The position numbers were made by a program, and so were the translations under genes. From positions 42,203,290-42,244,518 of the forward strand of contig NC_068987.1 in the NCBI RefSeq assembly GCF_001194135.2: DNA of 41,229 nucleotides, given 5' to 3'. The DNA comes from Octopus bimaculoides. Lineage: Eukaryota. The notes under the pieces are model-generated. The model did not search any database, was not told where the DNA came from, and saw only the letters and a program-made list of their open reading frames with translations. This document shows positions 2,620 through 41,110 of this stretch, piece by piece; position 1 is the stretch's first letter, and every line of letters begins with the position of its first letter.

Positions 2620-5600
2620 AGAATTTACAAAAAAAACCCAAAAGACGAAGATGGGTGTGTAAAGAACAAACAGATGTATTAGTTTAACGCTTGGGAAGTG
2701 AGAAAGTCTTTTAAGTTTTGAGCCTATGTTCTTCGACAGAAAGGAACACAGAAATAAATAGGGAGAGAAAATAGAAAGAGGTATAGTGGCTAGTGATCTA
2801 GCATGGCGAATGCCGGACAGTGGGGGTCACTCAGGAGAGCTAGGAAGAAGGGGAGATAATAAAGTAGTGGTGATCCCAAAATAAAGGTGCGCGTGCGTGT
2901 GCATGTGAGAGCATGTATGTGCAGGAGCATGCATGTGGAAGGGGGCTGGTGACATTGACGTGTGTTCATGTGCAGGTGTCTGGACGATGGTGTTGTGTGG
3001 TGGTGTTGGGGTGTGGGGGAGGCAAGAATGGGGGAAACAAGGGTTAGGTCTAAGGGATGGGGTCGGAGTGGCATGTGATGTATAGGGATAGTGGGTTGGA
3101 ATGTGTATGGGTGGGGTAACGAGGGAGTGGGTGACGATGAAGGGAGAGGGTGGAAGGGAGAAGGTGGGTAGGAGTGAAGAGAAGTAGGTGCCAGAGCAAG
3201 AGAGGAGAGGTGGGTGGAGGAAGTAAGTGTGAGAGGAAGAGAGGAGAGAGGAGGAGGGTTAGATGAAGAGAGAATGAGAGTTGAGCCCATGTGGCGCAAA
3301 GGAGCAAAGAGAAAAGATTGATCCCTGCTCATGGCAATGATGGGAGTCCAGATGGCCCCTGCGCAAGGACAGTCTGAACACAGATAGGTATTGTAAAGAG
3401 TGACTGGTAGAGTAAAAATGGCGTGAAACCGGAGTGTCGTTGCCAAATTGGATGTCTTGGAGGTGTTCCACGAACCATTCAGCCGTTTGACCGATGTATA
3501 GAGAAGGGTAGAGAGAACAGGAGATGCAGTAGATGACGTTGCTAGAAGTGCAGGTCAAGGAGGCAGTGATATGACAGGGTCAGTGATGGGTGCTTGTGAA
3601 GAGGTTGGTGCTAGAGAGATAAGGGCAAGTGTAGCAGTGTGGGTGGGAGCGGGGAAACGAGCCAGGTTGGGAGGTTGGGTTAGGGAAGAAGTTGTGGACC
3701 AAGAGGTCTTGTAGGTTGTGGGCTTGTTTGAAGGAGGGGAGAGTCAGTTAGGGAAGAAGTGCGAAGTGGAGGGGTTGGACTGCAGTCGCCTGAAGGCTCG
3801 GAGAATGGTGTGTTGGAGAGGTAGGGTGGTGGGGTGGTAGGTGAGGGGAAACGGGTGACGGCAAGGTGGGTGCATGCGGTGAGAGCAGATGCATGGTCCA
3901 TGGAATGTGCTCTGACAAGGGCAGTGTGGATAGTGGTGAGGGGATATTCACGTAGGATGAAGTGGCAAGCCATGAGTTGAAACTGAGTCTCACAGTCATG
4001 ATTGTCACTGCAAAGCCTGCGTAGATGGAGGAATTGGGAATAGGGGATGGAGAGCTTGGTGTGTTTAGGGTGGGAGGAGGAGAAATTGAGGTATGAGTGT
4101 GAGTCTGTGCGTTTGTAGTGGATGGAGGTGGTGAGAGTGGAGTGATAAATGCTGAGTGAAATGTCGAGAAAGGTGACTGAGGTGTCGGAAATAGTGCAGG
4201 AGAAGTGGAGGGCAGACGGAAAGATTTGACAAAAGAGAGGAAAGAGTTTAGATGTTCGCAGGAGAGTGAGGTTGCACCGATACAGTTTGTCAATATAATG
4301 ACCATATAGTTCAGGAGTGGGACCAATGAAACTTGAGAATATTTGGGCCTCAATGTAGCCAATAAACAAGTCCGCATAGTTGGGGCCCATTCTCATTCCC
4401 ATGGCCACTCCCGAGAACTGCTGGTAAAAATCACCCACGAATGAGAAGTTGTTAAGTGAGGACAAGTTCTGCCAGACGAAGGAGTGTGGACGTGTCAGGT
4501 TGGTGGTTGGGATGAAGGTCAAGAAAATGCTGGAGTGCATGCAGCCCCTTGTGGTGAAGGATCACCGTGTATAAACTCTTGATGTCAAGAGTGAAAAGAA
4601 GTTTAGAGGGGCCAAGAGGGAAGGAGAAAGAGTTGAACAAACGAAGAGCATGGTTGGTATCATGGATGTGAGAGGGCAGGAAAGCCACTAGGAGGCAAGG
4701 ACACAGTCAAGATATCTGGAGATGAGTTCGGTGGGGCAGTTGCGGGCAGAGACGATGGGGTAACCAGGGTTGTTAGGTTTGTGGATGTTGGGGAGGAAGT
4801 AAATCGTGGAAGTATGAGGGGTGTGGACAATGAGGTTAGAGGCGGTGGGGGGAGACGGGAGGAGGAGATGAGGTTATGGATAGTGGAGGACAGTCTGTTG
4901 GTAGCTGGGCGTGGGGTTGGAGGGCAGTAGAAGGAGATGTCTTGAAGTTGGCGGAGAGTTTCCACGTTGTAGAGGTCCGCGTACCACACCACCATGGCTC
5001 CACATTTGTCGGCCGGTTTTATGATGATGTCCATGTGGCGTTGGAGACATCGAAAGGCTGAGAGTTCAGCTGGAGAGATGTTCAGATATCGGGGATGCTG
5101 TGAAAAGTCAAACCGGTCCACAGCATGCTGGCAGGTACTCACAAACAGATCAACTGCTTGTAACTGGCCAGGAGCTGGCATCCACTGGGATGGTCGGCGG
5201 CCCAGGTCACTGAAGCAGTCTTCCTCATTAGATGCAAGTGGAGTGTCGCAGAAAAGTGTACACAACCTAACACAGTGCACAAAGCTGTGGATATCGGCAC
5301 AAGTCCGAAATTCATTGCTGGATGGAGTGAGGGGGATGAAGAGCAGACCCCCTACCGAGGAGGGAGTCCTCCACCTCAGAGAGGGGAAGATCTGGAGGAA
5401 TGGTAACAACAGACTGAAGTGGAGAAGTGGGTGGATGGGACAGAAGTAGGTGGGGTGGTGGAAAGTTGGGAGGGGAGATGAGGGTTATGTGGGTGGGGGG
5501 TTTGGAGGGATGGCGGGGTTTAGTGAGGATGGGAGCGTATCAGGGAGGGAGAGAGGTAGGGGAGGACTTGGGGTAGTGACATCAGCTGTGATGGAATGGA

Positions 5601-6450
5601 GGAGTGAGTGGAGTTTACATTGTTTGGTGTGAGCGAGAAATTGATGAAAGAGATGATTTAAATGAATTATGTAACGTAAAATTGTGTTAGCATGGGAGGG
5701 TGACTGAGAGGTGAAGAAGATGGAAAAAGCCAGAGGGAGAAGGTGGTTGATGGTGTGTATTTTGGAGAGATTAGAACAAATGGTGGCATGCATAAGGCGG
5801 TAGGATGTAGTGCAGATTATGTGTAGGATGGTTGAAGGAGAGTGGGGTGGAAATGGAGGCGGAAACCTCTAGGGATGAGGCGGTGATGAAGGCAGTGACT
5901 GAGAAATGAAAGGTGACTGCAGAAGCGTGTTTTTTTGAGGAGGAGGGAGTATAAAGTTGAAAGCAGTGGAAAGGAAGTGTGGAAAGGTGGTTTTTAGGTG
6001 GTGGTGAAGGTGGAGGAGAAAAGGTTTGTAATTGGGCATGATTGAAAAATGAGAAGAAAAGAGAGAGAAAGGAGAAAAAAGGAAAAAAAGAGGGGGGAGA
6101 GAGAAAGGCAATAGAGAAGTGAGGAGGAAAAATTCAAAACATGTGGGGAGAAGGCATGAGGAGAAAAAATGCAAATGGCATGAGGAGAAAAAAAATACAA
6201 GAGGTGAGAGGAGAAGAAAAAATAAAAACAAGGAGAGAAAGAAGGAGGAAGAAGAAACAAAGAGAAAGGGGAAGAAAGGGAAAAGAAAAGACAAAACGGA
6301 AAAAGAAAGGGAGGGAGGGAGAGGCAAGGTAACAAGTGTGGACTGAGAGAAGCAACAGTAGGAAAAAGCAGAAAGTACAAAAAGGTTTAGAAAAGTTCAA
6401 AAGGTTCAAATGTTGTGGTGTATTGGAGTGATTTCTCATCAAAGGAAGAG
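2620..6450 (-). mobile_element. Penelope-like retroelement (Neptune-like), near full length, frameshifted
   Basis: Minus-strand ORF pieces in order: IIIKPADKCGAMVVW, FTLDIKSLY, YQQFSGVAMGMRMGPNYADLF...YGHYID (RT), FLDISL..IHYKRTDSHSYLNFSSSHP (thumb), TCTSSNVIYCISCSLYPSLYIGQT..HL..PVSRHF (Cys-containing GIY-YIG endonuclease). Probable ATG at 6039. Confidence 0.9.
2708..2743 (-). ncRNA. Degenerate minimal hammerhead-like motif at the PLE 3' end
   Basis: Minus strand reads CTTT-CTGTCGA-A-GAAC-ATAG-GCTC-AAAA-CTT-A-AAAG: type I hammerhead layout with several core and stem mutations. Confidence 0.5.
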
Positions 6451-6499: not shown

Positions 6500-6700
6500 A
6501 GAAGAAAGTCCAGGGAAAATAATCCAAGCATCAATTTCAGTCTTCTGCTTCCCATCACTCATGATTATGATCCCAAGATTCTTAAATTTTTCCACTTGTC
6601 TCAGTGATGTTGTACTGATATGCTGAGTGCACAGGGAAGACTTTCTTGAGAGGACCAGTATCTCAGTCCTCAGACCCAGCACTCAGCATCAGACCCATTC
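6500..6700 (-). mobile_element. Decayed RTE-type LINE fragment
   Basis: LRQVEKFKNLGIIIMSDGKQKTEIDAWI resembles the RTE RT motif VEKFKYLG..DG....EID.RI. Confidence 0.45.
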
Positions 6701-12606: not shown

Positions 12607-13158
12607 AAGTATATTTCCACTGATATTGATCCAAACAATTCTGTATGTAGTAGATCTTCACTGTCACTTTAACACCACTAGCTGGCCTTCAGTGCCACAG
12701 TGATGTGCACTTTTTGTGAGAATTTCGACCAGGTTTTTAGCCTGGGAGTGACACAGTATTTTGATAAAATGCTTCATACTGCACCTTCCTTTGCAGAGTG
12801 CCACATTTCATGTTTGTTAGAAGGTACAAGTGGAAATGATCTTTTAGTGGAAGCCTGCTGTCAGATACAACAAACACCTAGCCCAGGTAACAGTTCAGGA
12901 AATTGCTGAACCTATTGGTAAGCCTATGCCCAGCTACTGACTTCTAGCTGGGCTACTTACTAGGATTGAAAAAATGATCAACAATACTCCATTAAAGTAA
13001 AGATTGTTTGTCAACTTAACATGGCAGTCCTGGTTTAGGACGAATGTTGTGTAATTTAGCCCCAGGAGACGTCATCTCCAGCTGGCTTTACAACACAATC
13101 TGCGTCCTTATATTTTCAAACAAGGGAATCTAGCACCCCCACTCAGCTCAAAGCAATA

Positions 13159-13203
13159 TCTGTGTATCGCGATTTCCGGGTTATTTCCCTTCATCAGTAC
13201 AGA
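13159..13203 (-). ncRNA. Minimal type I hammerhead ribozyme
   Basis: Minus strand reads TCTGTA-CTGATGA-A-GGG-AAATAA-CCC-G-GAA-ATCGCGAT-A-CACAGA: full catalytic core, stem II GGG/CCC, palindromic stem III, stem I TCTGT/ACAGA. Confidence 0.8.
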
Positions 13204-13614
13204 ATAATTGTTCGGCTGCCAAATTCCCGTTTGAAATATATAATTTTCAAAGTGACAGCTAGTCACTGATCTATAAATTAGAAAATTACTTTTTTAAAAT
13301 CTCAACGAGAGATATTCAGCAACAGTACTTTGTATGCCAACATAACATGGCAGTCCTGGTTTAGGACGAATGTTACTGTAATTTAGCCCCAGGAGATATC
13401 GTCTCCAGCTGGCTATACAACACGATCTGTGTCCTTATATTTTCGAACAAGGGAATCTAGCACCCCAACTCAGCTCAAAACAATATCTGTGTATTGCATT
13501 GTGAGATTAAAAAATAGTAATTTTCTAGTTTGTAGATCAGTGACTAGTTGTCACTTTGAAAATTATATATTTCAAACGGGAATTTGGCAGCGCCACCTCT
13601 AGCTGAACAATTAT

Positions 13615-13660
13615 TCTGTGCTGATGAAGGGAAATACACATGGAAATCGTGATACACAGA
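13615..13660 (+). ncRNA. Second hammerhead copy (stem II disrupted)
   Basis: TCTGTG-CTGATGA-AGGGAAATACACATG-GAA-ATCGTGAT-A-CACAGA: perfect 6-bp stem I and intact core, but the CCC strand of stem II is lost. Confidence 0.65.
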
Positions 13661-14634
13661 TATTGTTTTGAGCTGAGTGGGGGTGCTAGATTCCCTTGTT
13701 CGAAAATATAAGGACACAGATCATGTCATGTAGCCAGCTGGAGATGATGTCACCTGGGGCTAAATTACACAACATTCGTCCTAAACCAGGACTGCCATGT
13801 TAGGTTGGCAAACAATCTTTACTACAAAGTACTGTTGCTGAATATCTCTCATTGTGAGATTTAAAAATAGTAATTTTCTAATACTCTATTGAATTGTGGT
13901 TCTCCCCAACCACCAGTTTTGGAGATTCTACACTCATTGTGAGTGGTGCACATCCTCCATTGTCACATCTTCACCATCTTCTCTCTCCTTTCTTTTGTCT
14001 CTTTTTCTTCTCTTTCTCTCCTACTGAGGTAGCTGTTTATCTTCTTTACTTCAAGATGTCTATATCTCTCCCTCTACTTATACTCCTCTTAAGTGGCACA
14101 AAGCCACCTTCCTGAATACTACTCCCTTCGTTGAAGAATTTTGTAAGTTGTTTGACCTCATTGCTGTTGGTGCCATGTAAAAGCACCCAGTCTACACTGA
14201 AGTGGTTGGCATTAGGAATGTAAAAACCATGTCAAAGCAGAAGCAGACAGTAGAACTTAGTGCAGTCTTCTGACTTGTCAGCTCCTGTCAAACCATCCAG
14301 TTCATAGAAGGCAGGCACTGATAATAATGAAGGAGTTACTTTTATAATTTTAAAAATATTTAGAGTAATTTTTGAAGTTTGTTCAGTAAAATGTAGAAAA
14401 CAAAAATATAAAGCATAAATAAATCGAAACTTAATGTAAAGACAATTACACAGTTGTGTTGGTTATTATGTGATGGTTATTAATTGCTGGCAATAATACC
14501 AGTTTAACTTGGAGATAAATTTACAAATGTTTGTATATTCTAATGATATCAGTCTTCACTTTGGTAGTTTTCATTGTTTCTTTCTAATTTTTGTTTGTTT
14601 CTTGCTTCTAATTTTTCAGTTTTTACTAGGCACC

Positions 14635-15485
14635 ATGTATGATACTCCAAACAGCCTCCAAGACTGTTGCGTTGATTTTATTTGTGACAACATTGGAAAC
14701 TTGTGCCAGGTACAACCTGGAGTGGAAAAAAGCAACCGGAAGCTTGTATTCAAAGACCCTGATGTTTGTTTCCATGGAAAATTATCTGAACAAATTCTGC
14801 AGAGTTTGTGTGAAAAGGGTAAGCTAAATGATGAAACATTAAGTTTATTTGACCCAAGTGTTTCTATCTTGAAACGAGTGTCAATTCGCGATGCTCAGCT
14901 CACAACAAAAGGCCTACGGATATTAAAGTCACATAAAATATCTGAACTGGAAATAACTGGTTTGAAATCAGTAGCTGTAAATGATGTTATTGGCTGTCTT
15001 GGAGAGTGGACACTTTCTAACTTGCGAATGTTGAATGTAAGTAATAGTACTTTTATTAGTAGCAACAAGTATTGTGTGGTCATATCATTGGCAAAACTTC
15101 AAAACTTACAAAGCCTCAATGTTAGTAACACAGAATTTAATAAACATGGACTTGAAATAATAGTTGAAGAGTTACCTACTCTTGAAAGTCTTGACATATC
15201 AGGTACACCTATCAATGACATTTCTCCATTAAGAAAATGCAAAGATCGGTTACGTTGCTTGTCTATGTACAATTTGCGGGCATCGCATAATGACGAGTTA
15301 GTGTCGATATTATGTGAATTATCCAAACTGACCCACCTCGATGTATCTGATAGTGATGCACAGACATTTGTCAACACACAGACACGATTTAGAATACAAG
15401 AACTGCTTGTGCGTAAAACCTGTCTACCAAATTTAACCTCTTTAGATATATCTGGGAAAGAAGAAATATCTGAAGTGATATTATT
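14635..15485 (+). CDS. zyg11: Protein zyg-11 homolog (ZYG11B-like), first coding exon (LRR region)
   Basis: gcaccATG after a pyrimidine-rich acceptor. MYDTPNSLQDCCVDFI (BC-box-like SL..C...I), LESLDISGTPINDISPLRKCKDRL, LTHLDVSD and LPNLTSLDISG match ZYG11 from memory. Donor TT|GTAAGT, phase 2. Confidence 0.93.
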
Positions 15486-16219
15486 GTAAGTATTGCAGCT
15501 TTTCTTTTATTTCAGTTATTGTGAGTTTTTTTGTTTAGTAATTTATTCCATATTGCCAATGAAACATACTGTATATGTAGAGGATATATAGCAATTGATG
15601 GAACACCATCATTTGATTATCTAGATTCAGTTATTCAATGAACTGAATTACCTACTGTTGAACTAACTTGTAAGTGGCTGAGCATTCCATAGACACATGA
15701 GCCCATAATATAATTCTGAAGTACAATCAGTGTGACATAGTGTTATAGAATGGCTATAGCTTTTCAATTACTGGTACAATCTTTCTTACAGGCTCCTATA
15801 CAATGTTTGTATACCCAATTTCTCTCACAAAGAATGGATTGACCTAAGACTATAGAAAATTACATTTGCCCAAGGTCAGATATAATAACAAGAATTTGCA
15901 GACAGAATTACATAAGATGACAGTCAAAGGAAAGGTGTTGTGTTTATAGGCCATTCAACTCTTACCTTTGTGGAAAAAGACAACACATGTTAAAGCTATG
16001 ATGATGGTATTCCAATTTGTGTTGAGTGATCCAAGGTGCATAATTACTGACTGAAAAGGGTTTAAGTTTCAAAATTTGTCATGAACATTATAATGATTTT
16101 ATTCAATGCATCTGTAAGTAATAATATTTCTGAGGAGAGTATTGAAGACAAGCTACAGTAGTTTAGTAATTTTGACATTGTTGGTACTGGAAAAAGTCTA
16201 CCACCAACACTTCATTGAG

Positions 16220-21470: not shown

Positions 21471-22249
21471 AATTCAAAATGCATGTAAAACATGTCTTTT
21501 GTAATTTCTAAATTTCATTCAATAATAAAGTACAAGCTATTCCATTTGCTAGCTTTCTAAATAGATTACTAATACAGTGAATTCATACAGTATTTATCAA
21601 ACAGATTGGTTTCCTTTTATGTATTATTTAAACGATTAAGATAATGTTAATCCCATTCAGTTGTTAATAAAGATGCAATTGTGTAAAGTTCATAATGTAT
21701 ATGATTTTATACCAATTTCAGCATAAAAATATAATGTAACTGTTGATATTTATTTAAAAGGACCATAATCTCAAATCTTATTTTTGTGATGCGGATGGAT
21801 GAGGACAGTTGCATAAAGAAGTGCCAATCTCTTAAAGTAGAGGGAAGTTGTGGAAGAGGAAGACCCAGAAAGACATGGAAGGTGGTTGGCATTAAGAAGG
21901 GCATCCAGCTGTAGAAATCATGCCAAAACAGACTATGGAACCCAGTGCTGCCCCTGGCCTTGCCAGCTTCTGTCAAGCTATCCAACCCATGCCAGCATGG
22001 AAAACGAACATTAACTGATGATGATGATTGACATTTTCAATACCACTTGAAAATTCATCTGTTTAGGGCTCAAAAATGGATTCCTTGATAAATTTTACTT
22101 TCAAAAACATGCACCTGTTTAGCTTTTAGTAATAGCTTTTTATTTTCTAGAATATTCAAGTTGATTGTGGATGTCTGTGAAATGGCCCTTTTGGCCCACA
22201 GTGCTGCAGAACTGCAATAAACAAGAGGGTCATTGAGAATTTTAATAAA

Positions 22250-22550
22250 CAAAAGGAACCTCAAGAACTGTAATAATAAGAGGGGCCTGCAGGACTGTAA
22301 CAATAAGAGGGATCTGGAAAACTGTAATAAACAGGATGGATTTGGAAAGCTAATATAGAGGAGGGACCTGGAGAACTAATAAACAACAGAGATATAGATA
22401 ACTGTAGTAAACAGGAGGGATGTAGAAAACTGTTATAAACAGGAGGCACCTGCAAAACTAATAATAAGAGGAATCTGGAGAACTGTCATATAGAGGAAGA
22501 ACTGGAGAAATGTAATAAAAAGAGGGACCTGCAGAATTATATGATAGACG
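22250..22550. repeat. Degenerate ~27-bp minisatellite (~11 units)
   Basis: Units like AGGAGGGACCTGGAGAACTGTAATAAAC; related units at 19660-19770. Confidence 0.8.
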
Positions 22551-29068: not shown

Positions 29069-29624
29069 NNNNNNNNNNNNNNNNNNNNNNNNNNNNNNNN
29101 NNNNNNNNNNNNNNNNNNNNNNNNNNNNNNNNNNNNNNNNNNNNNNNNNNNNNNNNNNNNNNNNNNNNNNNNNNNNNNNNNNNNNNNNNNNNNNNNNNNN
29201 NNNNNNNNNNNNNNNNNNNNNNNNNNNNNNNNNNNNNNNNNNNNNNNNNNNNNNNNNNNNNNNNNNNNNNNNNNNNNNNNNNNNNNNNNNNNNNNNNNNN
29301 NNNNNNNNNNNNNNNNNNNNNNNNNNNNNNNNNNNNNNNNNNNNNNNNNNNNNNNNNNNNNNNNNNNNNNNNNNNNNNNNNNNNNNNNNNNNNNNNNNNN
29401 NNNNNNNNNNNNNNNNNNNNNNNNNNNNNNNNNNNNNNNNNNNNNNNNNNNNNNNNNNNNNNNNNNNNNNNNNNNNNNNNNNNNNNNNNNNNNNNNNNNN
29501 NNNNNNNNNNNNNNNNNNNNNNNNNNNNNNNNNNNNNNNNNNNNNNNNNNNNNNNNNNNNNNNNNNNNNNNNNNNNNNNNNNNNNNNNNNNNNNNNNNNN
29601 NNNNNNNNNNNNNNNNNNNNNNNN
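29069..29624. other. Assembly gap (N run)
   Basis: Run of N. Confidence 0.99.
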
Positions 29625-30100
29625 GTGTCCAAAAAAGGAAAGGTACACATAAGTGGGCTGGCTACACCCCTGGCAGAGGCCTTGGATTTAGGTCTCACTT
29701 GGCTTGCTGGGTCTTCTCACGCACAGCATATTTCCAAAGGTCTTGGTCAGAAGTCATCGCCTCAGTAAGGTCCAATGTTCGAAGGTCTTGCCTCACCACC
29801 TCATCCCAGGTCTTCCTGGGCCTACCTCTTCCACAGGTTCCTTCAACTGTTAGGGTCTGGCACTTTTTCACGCAGCTATCCTCGTCCATTCTCACCACAT
29901 GTCTATACCAGCGCAATCGTTTCTCTTGCACACTACAGCTGATGCTTCTTATGTTCAACTTTTCTCTCAAGATACTTACACTCTGTCGGGTATGCACACT
30001 GGCATTACTCATCCATCGGAGCATGCTGGCTTCATTCCTTGCGAGCTTAAGCATGTCCTCAGCAGTCACAGCCCATGTTTCACTGCCATGTAGCATGGCT
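29625..30100 (-). mobile_element. RTE LINE RT C-terminal fragment
   Basis: MLHGSETWAVT..RNEASMLRWM..RLRWYRHVVRM..GRGRPRKTW. The (CAT)n-tailed 3'UTR at 28755-28850 may be its end across the gap. Confidence 0.9.
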
Positions 30101-30229: not shown

Positions 30230-30329
30230 NNNNNNNNNNNNNNNNNNNNNNNNNNNNNNNNNNNNNNNNNNNNNNNNNNNNNNNNNNNNNNNNNNNNNNN
30301 NNNNNNNNNNNNNNNNNNNNNNNNNNNNN
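30230..30329. other. Assembly gap (100 N)
   Basis: Run of N followed by (TG)n. Confidence 0.99.
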
Positions 30330-31535: not shown

Positions 31536-32749
31536 TCAGGTTGAGTAAAAAGTAAGCAACGTTTTGAACCATGAAGAATTTGTACCAGATTTTTGCAGAG
31601 TTTTGAATATTTTTTAAACATTTTTTTACAATTGCCTGATAATACAGACTTTCCCAAACACATCAATAAATTAACATTGATATTCTCTTCACTGTTGTTA
31701 CAATCATCTGAAATGGAACTGTCAAAATGCAATATTTGAGCAATTTTGCTATTCAACTTCAAAAGAGGATGTAAAGCAGCTGAAACTGTTTGTGATATGA
31801 ACAAAACATTTGGTGAGGAAATGGCCAGTGAGTGATCAGCTTGAAAATGGTTTAAACAATTTCACAGTGCAGATTGTGATTTTTGTGGACGCCCTAATGA
31901 TGGTCAATTAAAGACCATCATTGAAAAAGATCCACGTAAAACCACTTGATAACTGGCAAAAGAACTTCAAGTTAGCCAGAAAACTGCCTGTAACTATTTG
32001 CATGTGATGAGAAAATTAAAAAAGCTCGACAAATTGGTACCACATGATTTGAATGAAAATCAGAAAATGTGCAGATATAAAATTTACTTGTCGCTTCTTC
32101 TCCATAACCAGACGGATCCATTTCTCGACTGTATTGTAACTTGCAATGAAAAGTGGATTCTGTACAATAATAAAAAATGTTCTTTGCAGTGGTTGGACCA
32201 AAATGAAGCACTGAAAACCTTCCCTATAACCCAGCTCTTCAAAAAGAAGGTTATGGTGACTGTTTGGAGGTGTACTATAACATCTTGAAACTTGGAAAAA
32301 CCATTACTGCAGAAACATATTGCCATGAAATTGCCAAAATGGACAAAAAGCTGCCACTCCTCTGTCCCAGATTGGTCAACAGAAGGACCAATCATACTTC
32401 AGGACAATGCTCAAACACATGTTTACTAAGATGCTTCAGAAGTTGAGGGAACTTGGCTATGAAGTTCTTCCCTACCCAGCTTATTCTCCAGACCTTTCTC
32501 CCACTGACGGCCACTTTTTCAAGCACCTTGATGGTTTCCTGTGAGAGATGCTGAAATTGCATTTAAAGAGTTCATCAGCTCCAGAACTTCAGACTTTTAT
32601 GTTACCAGAATAAACAAACTTGTAACTCGTTGGCAAAAATGTGTTGATTGTAATGGTACTTACTTTGATGAATAAAATTTCCGCATTGTTGAAATATATT
32701 GTGATGAATTTCATGTTTCAAAACGTTGCTTACTTTTTACTCAGCCTGA
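31536..32749 (+). mobile_element. Full-length, inactivated mariner transposon
   Basis: ~40-bp TIRs (TCAGGTTGAGTAAAAAGTAAGCAACGTTTTGAA.. / ..TTCAAAACGTTGCTTACTTTTTACTCAGCCTGA) with TA on both sides. Pseudo-transposase 31713-32675 has VPHDLN, IVTCNEKW, QDNA and YSPDLSPTD, with stops and frameshifts. Confidence 0.92.
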
Positions 32750-39830: not shown

Positions 39831-41110
39831 ATCATCATCATCATCATCGTTTAACGTCCGCTTTCCATGCTAGCATGGGTTGCACAATTTGACTGAGGAC
39901 TGGCAAGCCAGAAGGCTGCACCAGGCTCCAATCTGATCTGGCAGAGTTTCTACAGCTAGATGCCCTTCCTAACGCCAACCACTCCGAGAGTGTAGTGGGT
40001 GCTTTTACGTGCCACTGGCACAAGGGCCAGTCACACGGTACTGGCAACGGCCACGCTCAAAAAGGTGTTTTTTACGTGCCACCTGCACGGGAGCCAGTCC
40101 AGCGGCACTGGCAACGGCCTCGCTCGAATGATTTTCTAACGCGCCACCAGCAAAAGTACTTGAAAGCAACGCAGGTAACGATTACGCTCAAATGGTGCTA
40201 TTTACGGGCCACTAGCACGGAAGCCAGACAGCTGCTCTGGCAATGAACGTGCTCAACAGTGCTGTTAGTGCTCCACTGGCGCGGTGACCAGTCATCAAAT
40301 ATGGTTCAATTACAATTTCGATTTCACTTACCACAACAGGTCTTCGCAAGCAAAGTTTAGTGTCCAATGAAGGAGAGGTTGGCATGGGTACCAGTCGTCG
40401 GATTCGATTCGATTTCAATTTCAGATTTCAAATTCCAAATTCACTTGCCTCAACAGGTCTTCACAAGCAGAGTTTTTTAGTGTCCACTGAAGTAAAGATA
40501 CAGATTAGTGAGCTGGCTACACTTCTGGCAGAGATCACAGATTATGCTCTCACTTGCCTTGCTGGGTCTTCTCACGTACTGCATATTGCCAAAGGTCCCG
40601 ATCACTGGTCATTGCCTCGGTGAGGCCTAAAGTTCGAAGGTCATGCTTCACCACCTCATCCCAGATCTTCCTGGGTCTATCTCTTCCACAGGTTCCCTTA
40701 ACTGCTAGGGTGTGGCACTTTTTCACACAGCTATCCTCATCCATTCGCACCACATGTCCATACCAGCGCAATCGTCTCTCTTGCACACCACAACTGATGC
40801 TTCTTAGGTCTAACTTTTCTCTCAAGGTACTTACACTCTGTCGAGTATGCACACTTACATTACACATCCATCGGAGCATACTGGCTTCGTTTCTTGCAAG
40901 CTTACACATGTCCTCAGCAGTCACTGACCATGTTTCATTGCCATGTAGCATGGCTGTTCGTACACATGTGTCATACAGACTGCCTTTTACTCTGAGTGAC
41001 AGGCCCTTTGTCACCAGCAGAGGTAAGAGCTCTCTAAACTTTGCCCAGGCTATTCTTATTCTAGCAGCTACACTTTCAATGCCACCCCCTGTTACAAACA
41101 TGGTCACCTA
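39831..41110 (-). mobile_element. RTE LINE 3' portion (RT C-terminus, long 3'UTR, (GAT)n tail)
   Basis: Open 185-aa frame GGGIESVAARIRIAWAKFRELLPLL..MLHGNETW..RRLRWYGHVVRM..RPRKIW; tail at 39831-39849. Confidence 0.92.

Follow-up and report, generated by a model that had tools for sequence, protein, structure and literature searches.

The 41,229-nt stretch of Octopus bimaculoides DNA analysed here (the window; assembly GCF_001194135.2, contig NC_068987.1, forward-strand positions 42,203,290 to 42,244,518) contains a non-coding insert of 885 bp at 12997-13881. The insert consists of ~340-nt hammerhead-bearing units, which are arranged in tandem and head-to-head, and a 14-bp duplication is present at both sides. 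We consider it about two-thirds probable that the locus represents one old insertion of a ~330-350-nt non-coding hammerhead repeat, that is, a retrozyme without long terminal repeats (non-LTR retrozyme) or, what amounts to the same, a non-autonomous element derived from a Penelope-like element (PLE).

The repeat structure was obtained by blastn comparison of the region with the whole window. Two inverted (reverse-complement) matches were found, one between 12979-13304 and 13502-13837 (339 nt, 87%), the other between 13277-13494 and 13652-13882 (88%). A tandem relation was observed between 13004-13170 and 13330-13497 (91%, period 326-327), and the 31 nt at 13497-13527 recur at 13850-13880 with 97% identity. 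No further copies of the unit were found in the 41-kb window. A preliminary description of the locus, made by reading the letters, had proposed two tandem copies (A and B) plus an inverted, circularly permuted copy C redundant by ~30 nt. Self-comparison confirmed this layout almost to the base, and the monomer of ~340 nt given there agrees with the measured unit length of 327-354 nt. The pairwise identity of the units is 91-93%, and many of the differences between them are CpG to TpG changes. A 33-nt run identical in three copies was considered as a special signal and rejected, because its length is within expectation at such divergence (estimated P ~0.3).

For alignment of the units, the pieces were placed in register of the putative ribozyme cleavage site (Table 1). 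The minus-strand arm on the left is a 1.5-unit tandem, composed in its sense direction of 7 nt, the full unit L1 and the partial unit L2. The plus-strand arm on the right has 1.1 units and is composed of R0 followed by R1. The arms lie head-to-head, so that each has its sense 3' end on the outside; read along the minus strand, an inverted copy (13497-13881) is followed by a truncated unit and then by the full unit. Compared with the other units, L1 is without 12 nt (ACAATCTTTACT) at the unit end-to-start junction, precisely where L2 terminates, while R1 continues uninterrupted across this junction. R0 bears a 12-nt insertion, AGCGCCACCTCT. The limits of homology at the arm junction were determined by position-by-position comparison (13164-13174 with 13491-13501, and 13497-13527 with 13850-13880). 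The inner ends of the arms meet at 13497-13500, where the left arm shares 2-4 nt (CA/CATT) with the beginning of the right one, and the inner end of the left arm lies within the helix III palindrome. At the outer ends, the right arm outlasts the terminal monomer position of the left arm by 59 nt when counted in R units, or by 47 nt in L1 units. The pairing partner of the left terminus is found 59 nt inside the right end, so the termini are not mutual inverted repeats.

Table 1. Features of the insert and its flanks (positions in the window; strand gives the sense direction of the unit)
Feature	Position	Strand	Description
Duplication, left copy	12983-12996		AATACTCCATTAAA; adjoins the end of inter-copy homology
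Unit L2	12997-13164	-	168-nt partial unit that starts at the cleavage site and forms the outer (sense 3') end of the left arm; identity 92% with both L1 and R1
Hammerhead-like motif, copy A	13159-13203	-	UCUGUA CUGAUGA A-GGG-AAAUAA-CCC-G GAAA UCGCGA UA/CACAGA (slash, putative cleavage site); matches the descriptor
Unit L1	13165-13491	-	complete 327-nt unit, from cleavage site to cleavage site; spans the boundary between the previously described copies A and B
Arm junction, head-to-head	13492-13500		from direct reading against the unit alignment
Unit R0	13497-13654	+	158-nt 3' part including the hammerhead-like motif; 91% identical to L1
Hammerhead-like motif, copy C	13615-13660	+	core boxes, helix I and helix III (AUCGUGAU) kept; helix II lost
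Unit R1	13655-13881	+	227-nt partial unit (5' part) that starts at the cleavage site and forms the outer (sense 3') end of the right arm; identity 93% with L1, 92% with L2
Tail-like extension	13823-13881	+	from the collinearity of L2 and R1; the last 31 nt repeat the start of R0
Duplication, right copy	13880-13893		AATACTCTATTGAA; the first 2-3 nt may belong to the element or to the duplication

The flanking sequences AATACTCCATTAAA and AATACTCTATTGAA match at 12 of 14 positions and both differences are transitions, which reproduced the match reported in the preliminary description. As a control, 20,000 pairs of 40-nt zones ~900 nt apart were taken from the same window. Only 0.5% of the pairs reached a match of 12/14 or better, giving an empirical P of ~0.005. 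Since two mismatches in 14 positions fit the 7-9% divergence of the units, a single old insertion is the simplest reading. The earlier proposal of a single insertion event is thus upheld by both the anatomy, which is that of a single retro-insertion, and the significant flanking duplication. The empty site before the insertion would hold one AATACTCYATTRAA. At the left boundary, there is some similarity between target and element, as the 10 nt to the left of copy A (CAACAATACT, 12980-12989) resemble CAACAGTACT of the monomer.

No coding capacity was found in the insert, in accordance with what had been described before. The longest open reading frames (ORFs) are 52-57 aa, and a six-frame search of 5.8 billion proteins yielded as relative only the repeat-derived C-terminal tail of one octopus gene model. 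When a 69-aa antisense ORF was compared with 1.84 billion representative proteins, the same Octopus bimaculoides tail was the only real match; four other protein matches were weak, spread over multiple stretches, and were dismissed. Neither the ORF list nor the six-frame search revealed an ORF for a reverse transcriptase (RT) or GIY-YIG endonuclease within 12997-13881, therefore the element is non-autonomous at best. ARAGORN detected no tRNA-like head in the element, Rfam gave no match to tRNA, 5S or 7SL RNA, and no poly(A), A-rich or simple-repeat tail is present at either outer end. Together with the offset termini, these results argue against a coding element, a short interspersed nuclear element (SINE) and a miniature inverted-repeat transposable element (MITE). 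The polymerase III-derived head and the A-rich or LINE-derived 3' tail of a SINE dependent on a long interspersed nuclear element (LINE) are both absent. A MITE or foldback element would have inverted repeats at its very ends and a duplication of short, fixed length; here the ends carry none and the duplication is 14 bp. A MITE with terminal inverted repeats, which the preliminary description had named as a competing possibility, is likewise not what was found, given that the left terminus pairs far inside the right end.

Each complete monomer had been claimed to hold a hammerhead core. CTGATGA was found at 13191-13197 on the minus strand and at 13621-13627 on the plus strand, and each is followed by GAAA and then AUA in the correct order and spacing. 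Cleavage would take place between 13165 and 13164 in copy A, and between 13654 and 13655 in copy C. Helix I (UCUGUG/CACAGA) has 6 bp in copy C, and 5 bp with a mismatch at position 2.1 in copy A. Helix III of copy A is AUCGCGAU, a perfect 8-nt palindrome. Palindromic helix III is a hallmark of metazoan type I hammerheads that function only as dimers (PMC4209133). The claim therefore stands for the core boxes, helix I and helix III of both copies, but not for helix II, which is present only in copy A. In copy C, CCCGG has become CACAUGG, helix II is gone and the descriptor fails. The differences between the copies look like decay from an ancestor which may have had G at position 2.1, CCCGG and CGCG. 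With a sub-canonical helix II in copy A and none in copy C, competence as a ribozyme is not demonstrable for either genomic copy. In our reading, the motif is genuinely derived from a hammerhead, sub-canonical, and now damaged in both copies.

The motif is not a chance match. In simulated sequence, motifs fitting the descriptor occurred at 1.08 per Mb, equal to 7.6e-4 per monomer, and those with a perfect palindromic helix III at 0.0097 per Mb, equal to 6.8e-6 per monomer. RNAcofold predicted the double hammerhead with an 8-bp helix III as the minimum-energy dimer (–25.1 kcal/mol for copy A and –30.9 kcal/mol for the putative ancestor). In addition, a custom covariance model was built by aligning four cleavage-mapped retrozyme ribozymes (supplement of PMC7229834), and the window was searched with filters off. 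Copy A was the top match in the window, with a full-length alignment and 14.3 bits. Copy C ranked fifth with 11.9 bits and helix II skipped, and matches 2-4 were matches to the helix I sequence with the entire core deleted. When the element alone was searched, the E values were 0.0014 (A) and 0.0068 (C), with rough calibration.

Two other candidates were considered and rejected. GUCCUGGUUUAGGACGAA on the opposite strand of the element might have been a second ribozyme, but it has no CUGANGA box and its position 15.1 is U. A second descriptor match in the window, at 6673-6637 on the minus strand (CUGAGGA ... GAAA ... UU), was discarded as the core is paired in its minimum-energy fold (GAGGAC/GUCCUC). 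Situated next to a Penelope-like remnant (see below), it lies in a hairpin (6610-6700, minus strand; z = –3.8) whose outer stem is prolonged by 11 perfect base pairs; Rfam gave no ribozyme match for it, and it is probably a plain hairpin.

The RNA of the unit is predicted to be highly structured. The fold of L1 was more stable than those of 100 out of 100 shuffled sequences (z = –3.8), and so was that of the circular permutation 13528-13881 (100/100, z = –4.4). In the unit fold, helix I is prolonged into a long imperfect stem. Retrozyme RNAs have been described as highly self-paired (PMC7229834, PMC7761336). A separate observation is that the hairpin formed by the head-to-head arms at 13402-13744 matches plant microRNA precursor models (MIR2646, E 9e-23, far below the gathering score). 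Matches to long-hairpin microRNA models of this kind were all that the Rfam scans of the window, the region and the 86-nt slices returned; they are artefacts of the inverted repeat and were rejected as microRNA evidence.

One further copy of the unit was recognised outside the window. Translation of the unit in its antisense frame gives 82-84% identity to the last 38 residues of the Octopus bimaculoides protein A0A0L8FIX1, hence the unit family has at least one other locus. The match includes ISVYRDF, which spans the cleavage site, helix III and GAAA, and the alignment ends before the CUGAUGA box. This copy would imply CCUGG, possibly another product of CpG decay of CCCGG. Two conserved blocks (24 and 27 nt) were also used as exact patterns against metagenome, viral and prokaryote genome collections; neither occurred there, which is unsurprising for a repeat of animal origin. 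Octopus hammerheads or retrozymes are not mentioned in the octopus repeat surveys or the other literature searched. The assignment to a retrozyme family made in the preliminary description is accordingly sustained in part: the anatomy, the non-random motif and the architecture shared with validated ribozymes support it, while the family is represented by one outside copy at the protein level.

Non-LTR retrozymes are repeats of 150-450 bp with type I hammerheads, a GC content under 50% and duplications of more than 4 bp (PMC7229834). The insert shares the short tandem units and the duplication longer than 4 bp, is non-coding, is devoid of LTR, primer-binding site and polypurine tract, and occurs together with PLEs; its GC content is 38%. 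The layout of its motif is that of the ribozymes validated for the retrozymes of mussel, coral and axolotl. In molluscs, this size has already been described, as the non-LTR retrozymes of the mussel Mytilus galloprovincialis are 350-390 bp (Cervera & de la Pena 2020, PMC7229834). The octopus units resemble the mussel ones in their molluscan host, non-coding nature, similar length (327-354 nt here) and GC content below 50%. A type I hammerhead with a 6-bp helix I is common to both, as is a helix III formed by an 8-nt palindrome with CGCG at its centre (ACGCGCGU in mussel, AUCGCGAU here), and GAAACGCGCGUC in mussel corresponds to GAAAUCGCGAUA here. In both cases, the RNAs are predicted to be highly self-paired and PLEs co-occur. 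Beyond the core, no sequence similarity was detectable. Helix II in mussel is GUCU/AGAC with G10.1-C11.1, in contrast to three G-C pairs and A•G in the octopus motif, and H17 is A here, not C. Mussel retrozymes form long direct arrays, whereas inverted pieces of 1.5 and 1.1 units were found in octopus, and self-cleavage and circular RNA have been demonstrated in mussel but are putative in octopus.

The axolotl retrozyme Ax353 (PMC7229834, Supplementary Table 2) provides a counterpart for helix II. Its three G-C pairs are flanked by a mismatch, U...U there and A...G here, so a mismatch at 10.1-11.1 occurs in a validated ribozyme. A17 is likewise shared, cleavage being after GUA there and putatively after AUA here, and Ax353 also has a palindromic helix III (ACACGUGU). 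Ax353 differs in its vertebrate host, unrelated unit sequence and long arrays.

The arrangement of the insert links it to PLEs. In PLE insertions, a partial tandem is accompanied by a neighbouring inverted copy that is truncated at its 5' side, and one end bears a tail of 30-40 nt (PMC8557442). A purified PLE protein has been shown to cut both strands of the target and to extend them; its reverse transcription begins at two internal sites, and ATT is preferred (PMC11167929). The tail reflects the two start sites (PMC8557442, PMC11167929). The same signature, i.e. partial tandem, inverted 5'-truncated copy and an extension at one end, is present here with a different tail length, which bears out the PLE-like tandem and inverted layout of the preliminary description. 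The AT-rich target, a nick after ATT, the use of both target strands as primers and a dimer-dependent hammerhead would be further likenesses. A Penelope-type reverse-transcriptase remnant is located 7 kb away at ~2790-5800 on the minus strand, the relatives of which carry RVT_1, PF26215 and GIY-YIG domains, and PLEs are abundant in octopus genomes (PMC13282606, PMC8967140). The octopus insert is unlike PLEs in that it contains no RT/endonuclease ORF, its unit is only ~340 nt, and its ends are offset by 47-59 nt.

The arms also carry information about the template. Each arm is longer than one unit and crosses the unit junction, implying a multimeric or circular template as proposed earlier, and the outer ends lie at differing monomer positions, implying that there was no fixed 3' end. 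The following course of events may be envisaged. The ancestral unit would have carried a type I hammerhead in which a 6-bp helix I was combined with a short helix II of G-C pairs and a helix III of palindromic sequence. Such a ribozyme would have been active only as a dimer in multimeric transcripts, releasing unit-length RNA open to circularisation. A Penelope-like reverse transcriptase/GIY-YIG endonuclease might then have copied multimeric or circular repeat RNA. Both strands of the AT-rich target would have been nicked 14 bp apart, with each 3'-OH priming a cDNA: the top strand (...CCATTAAA-3', the 3' end of the left duplication copy) that of the left arm, and the bottom strand (...GAGTATT-3', the complement of the right duplication copy) that of the right arm. 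In this scheme, the outer ends are the start points, and cDNA synthesis would have begun at two monomer positions 47-59 nt apart. Both cDNAs would have exceeded one unit and been joined head-to-head via the 2-4-nt microhomology near the ribozyme, and fill-in would have produced the 14-bp duplication. The drift of 7-9% and the damage to both ribozyme copies make the locus a fossil, and the element at this locus is decayed and most likely inert.

Several observations weigh against a retrozyme insertion of this kind. As to the insertion, a linear monomer cut by the ribozyme was not the template, since the inner end of the left arm is situated 7-8 nt upstream of the cleavage site. At 47-59 nt, the offset of the outer ends is larger than the 30-40-nt tail of published insertions, and the 12-nt gap of L1 ends exactly at the left-arm terminus, which hints that the unit had a defined linear end and was not simply a featureless circle. 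There are only 1.5 and 1.1 units at the locus and no long array, and blastn detected no sequence similarity between the unit and the Penelope-like remnant in the window. As to the ribozyme, the canonical helix II of ~4 bp closed by G10.1-C11.1 is absent in both copies; copy A, the only one that can form any helix II, has three G-C pairs (A-GGG/CCC-G) and A•G at 10.1-11.1. No match to the Rfam hammerhead models was obtained at the gathering score, at E<=10 over 1.25 kb, or on 86-nt slices at E<=10. The custom model was built from only four sequences, its calibration is rough, and the window-wide E of 0.063 for copy A is not significant by itself. The descriptor was relaxed after the sequence had been seen, which makes the chance figures generous, but the margin is still large.

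The main rival to a retrozyme is that the unit represents a non-coding pseudo-LTR, the 3' terminus of an autonomous PLE, left as a severely 5'-truncated partial tandem with the usual inverted copy. This we regard as unlikely, even though the architecture is exactly that published for PLE insertions (PMC8557442), PLE pseudo-LTRs bear hammerheads (PMC4209133), PLEs are present in the window as well as plentiful in octopus genomes, and the position of the L1 gap suggests a discrete element end. The units themselves speak against it. L1 is complete from ribozyme to ribozyme, and R0 plus R1 close the circle after ~354 nt, so the template was a short-unit tandem and not a pseudo-LTR-ORF-pseudo-LTR. 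There is no coding trace in six frames, and blastn showed no similarity to the PLE remnant of the window. Moreover, helix I and helix III (with its loop) are of full, canonical size as in retrozymes, unlike the minimal PLE type with its long helix II (PMC4209133, PMC7229834). The distinction is partly semantic if retrozymes derive from pseudo-LTRs (bioRxiv 10.64898/2026.07.22.740005).

It is considerably less probable that the insert is a SINE-like non-autonomous retroposon moved by a LINE, in which twin priming made the inversion and the hammerhead boxes are a relic or a coincidence. Twin priming of LINE-1 generates a target duplication, a head-to-head inversion and microhomology at the junction. 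Twin-primed LINE-1 copies thus resemble the insert in the head-to-head segments with sense 3' ends outwards, the microhomology junction and a 14-bp duplication; LINE reverse-transcriptase fragments occur in the window, and the missing Rfam hammerhead match would also fit. But a twin-primed LINE-1 has poly(A), whereas no A-rich or simple-repeat 3' tail was found at the outer ends here, nor a tRNA-, 5S- or 7SL-like head. The unit showed no blastn similarity to the LINE fragments of the window or to the sequence downstream of the one at 40550. The arms have their ends at different places in the monomer, cover overlapping parts of it and are each longer than one unit, which requires a multimeric or circular template, unlike LINE-1 twin priming, and a coincidental motif with palindromic helix III is hardly to be expected at the rate simulated above. 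Least credible is an origin at the DNA level (a foldback element or MITE with long inverted arms, a local inverted duplication, or mis-assembly of dispersed copies), for although the inverted arms extend over 339 nt at 87%, PLE-type repeats confuse short-read assemblies (PMC8557442) and N gaps exist elsewhere in the scaffold, the termini are not mutual inverted repeats, cut-and-paste transposons do not typically leave a duplication of 14 bp, 1.5 units stand in tandem in one arm, divergence between the copies amounts to 7-9%, and the region has no Ns and a significant flanking duplication, favouring a real single insertion.

The window is a stretch of animal scaffold in which N gaps, microsatellites and remains of transposons are found. 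The Penelope-like element at 2790-5800 (minus strand) is decayed; it retains the RT motif YQQFSGVAMG and the GIY-YIG-like NVIYCISC...YIGQT, and contains frameshifts. A search for pseudo-LTRs around it returned only microsatellite matches. The plus strand of this region has 38-41% G and 11-13% C, and the adjoining 5800-6450 is 79% purine on the plus strand. As the coding strand is C-rich and G-poor, the translated peptides of the remnant are rich in Pro, Ser, Leu and Thr. This composition looks like strand-specific hypermutation from T to C on the sense strand.

The retrozyme insertion lies ~620 bp upstream of a large open exon (14509-15489, plus strand). The product of this exon is a leucine-rich-repeat protein resembling ZYG11/ZER1 (Pfam LRR_Zer-1), and identity to its best relatives is only 68%. 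Two related ORFs at 29695-30096 and 40550-41107, both on the minus strand, resemble C-terminal fragments of non-LTR (LINE) reverse transcriptases (…GRGRPRKTWDEVV…) and have no Pfam match; the former adjoins an N gap. A mariner-type transposase fragment was identified at 31998-32288 on the plus strand (Pfam Transposase_1, E 9.5e-7), and a minisatellite with ~12 copies of a 28-nt unit (AACTGTAATAAACAGGAGGGATCTGGAA, 68% matches) at 22210-22531. Runs of N (assembly gaps) at 1390-2011, 29069-29624 and 30230-30329 give rise to spurious long X-filled ORFs in the ORF list.

A link of retrozymes to PLEs has already been proposed (bioRxiv 10.64898/2026.07.22.740005). Their dependence on PLEs has so far been argued from co-occurrence and pseudo-LTR similarity, and the integration route is still described as unknown. 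A clean insertion with duplication, twin arms and offset starts would be a footprint tying the in vitro behaviour of the PLE enzyme to a genomic retrozyme. On a further-reaching view, which we put forward only tentatively, the insert belongs to the first recognised cephalopod retrozyme family, its full integration footprint is structural evidence of mobilisation by a Penelope-like RT/GIY-YIG protein, and its ancestral A•G ribozyme was an active dimeric variant missed by covariance models. If this were true, the footprint would comprise both target strands as primers, two start sites on the RNA, arms of more than one unit and a nick after ATT. If transcribed, the head-to-head arms would give an imperfect double-stranded RNA of ~340 bp, and octopus RNA editing or small-RNA pathways would be plausible users of such a hairpin. 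Since the ribozyme variant was undetected by Rfam models, standard annotation would miss such elements, and the locus would add cephalopods to the list of retrozyme hosts.

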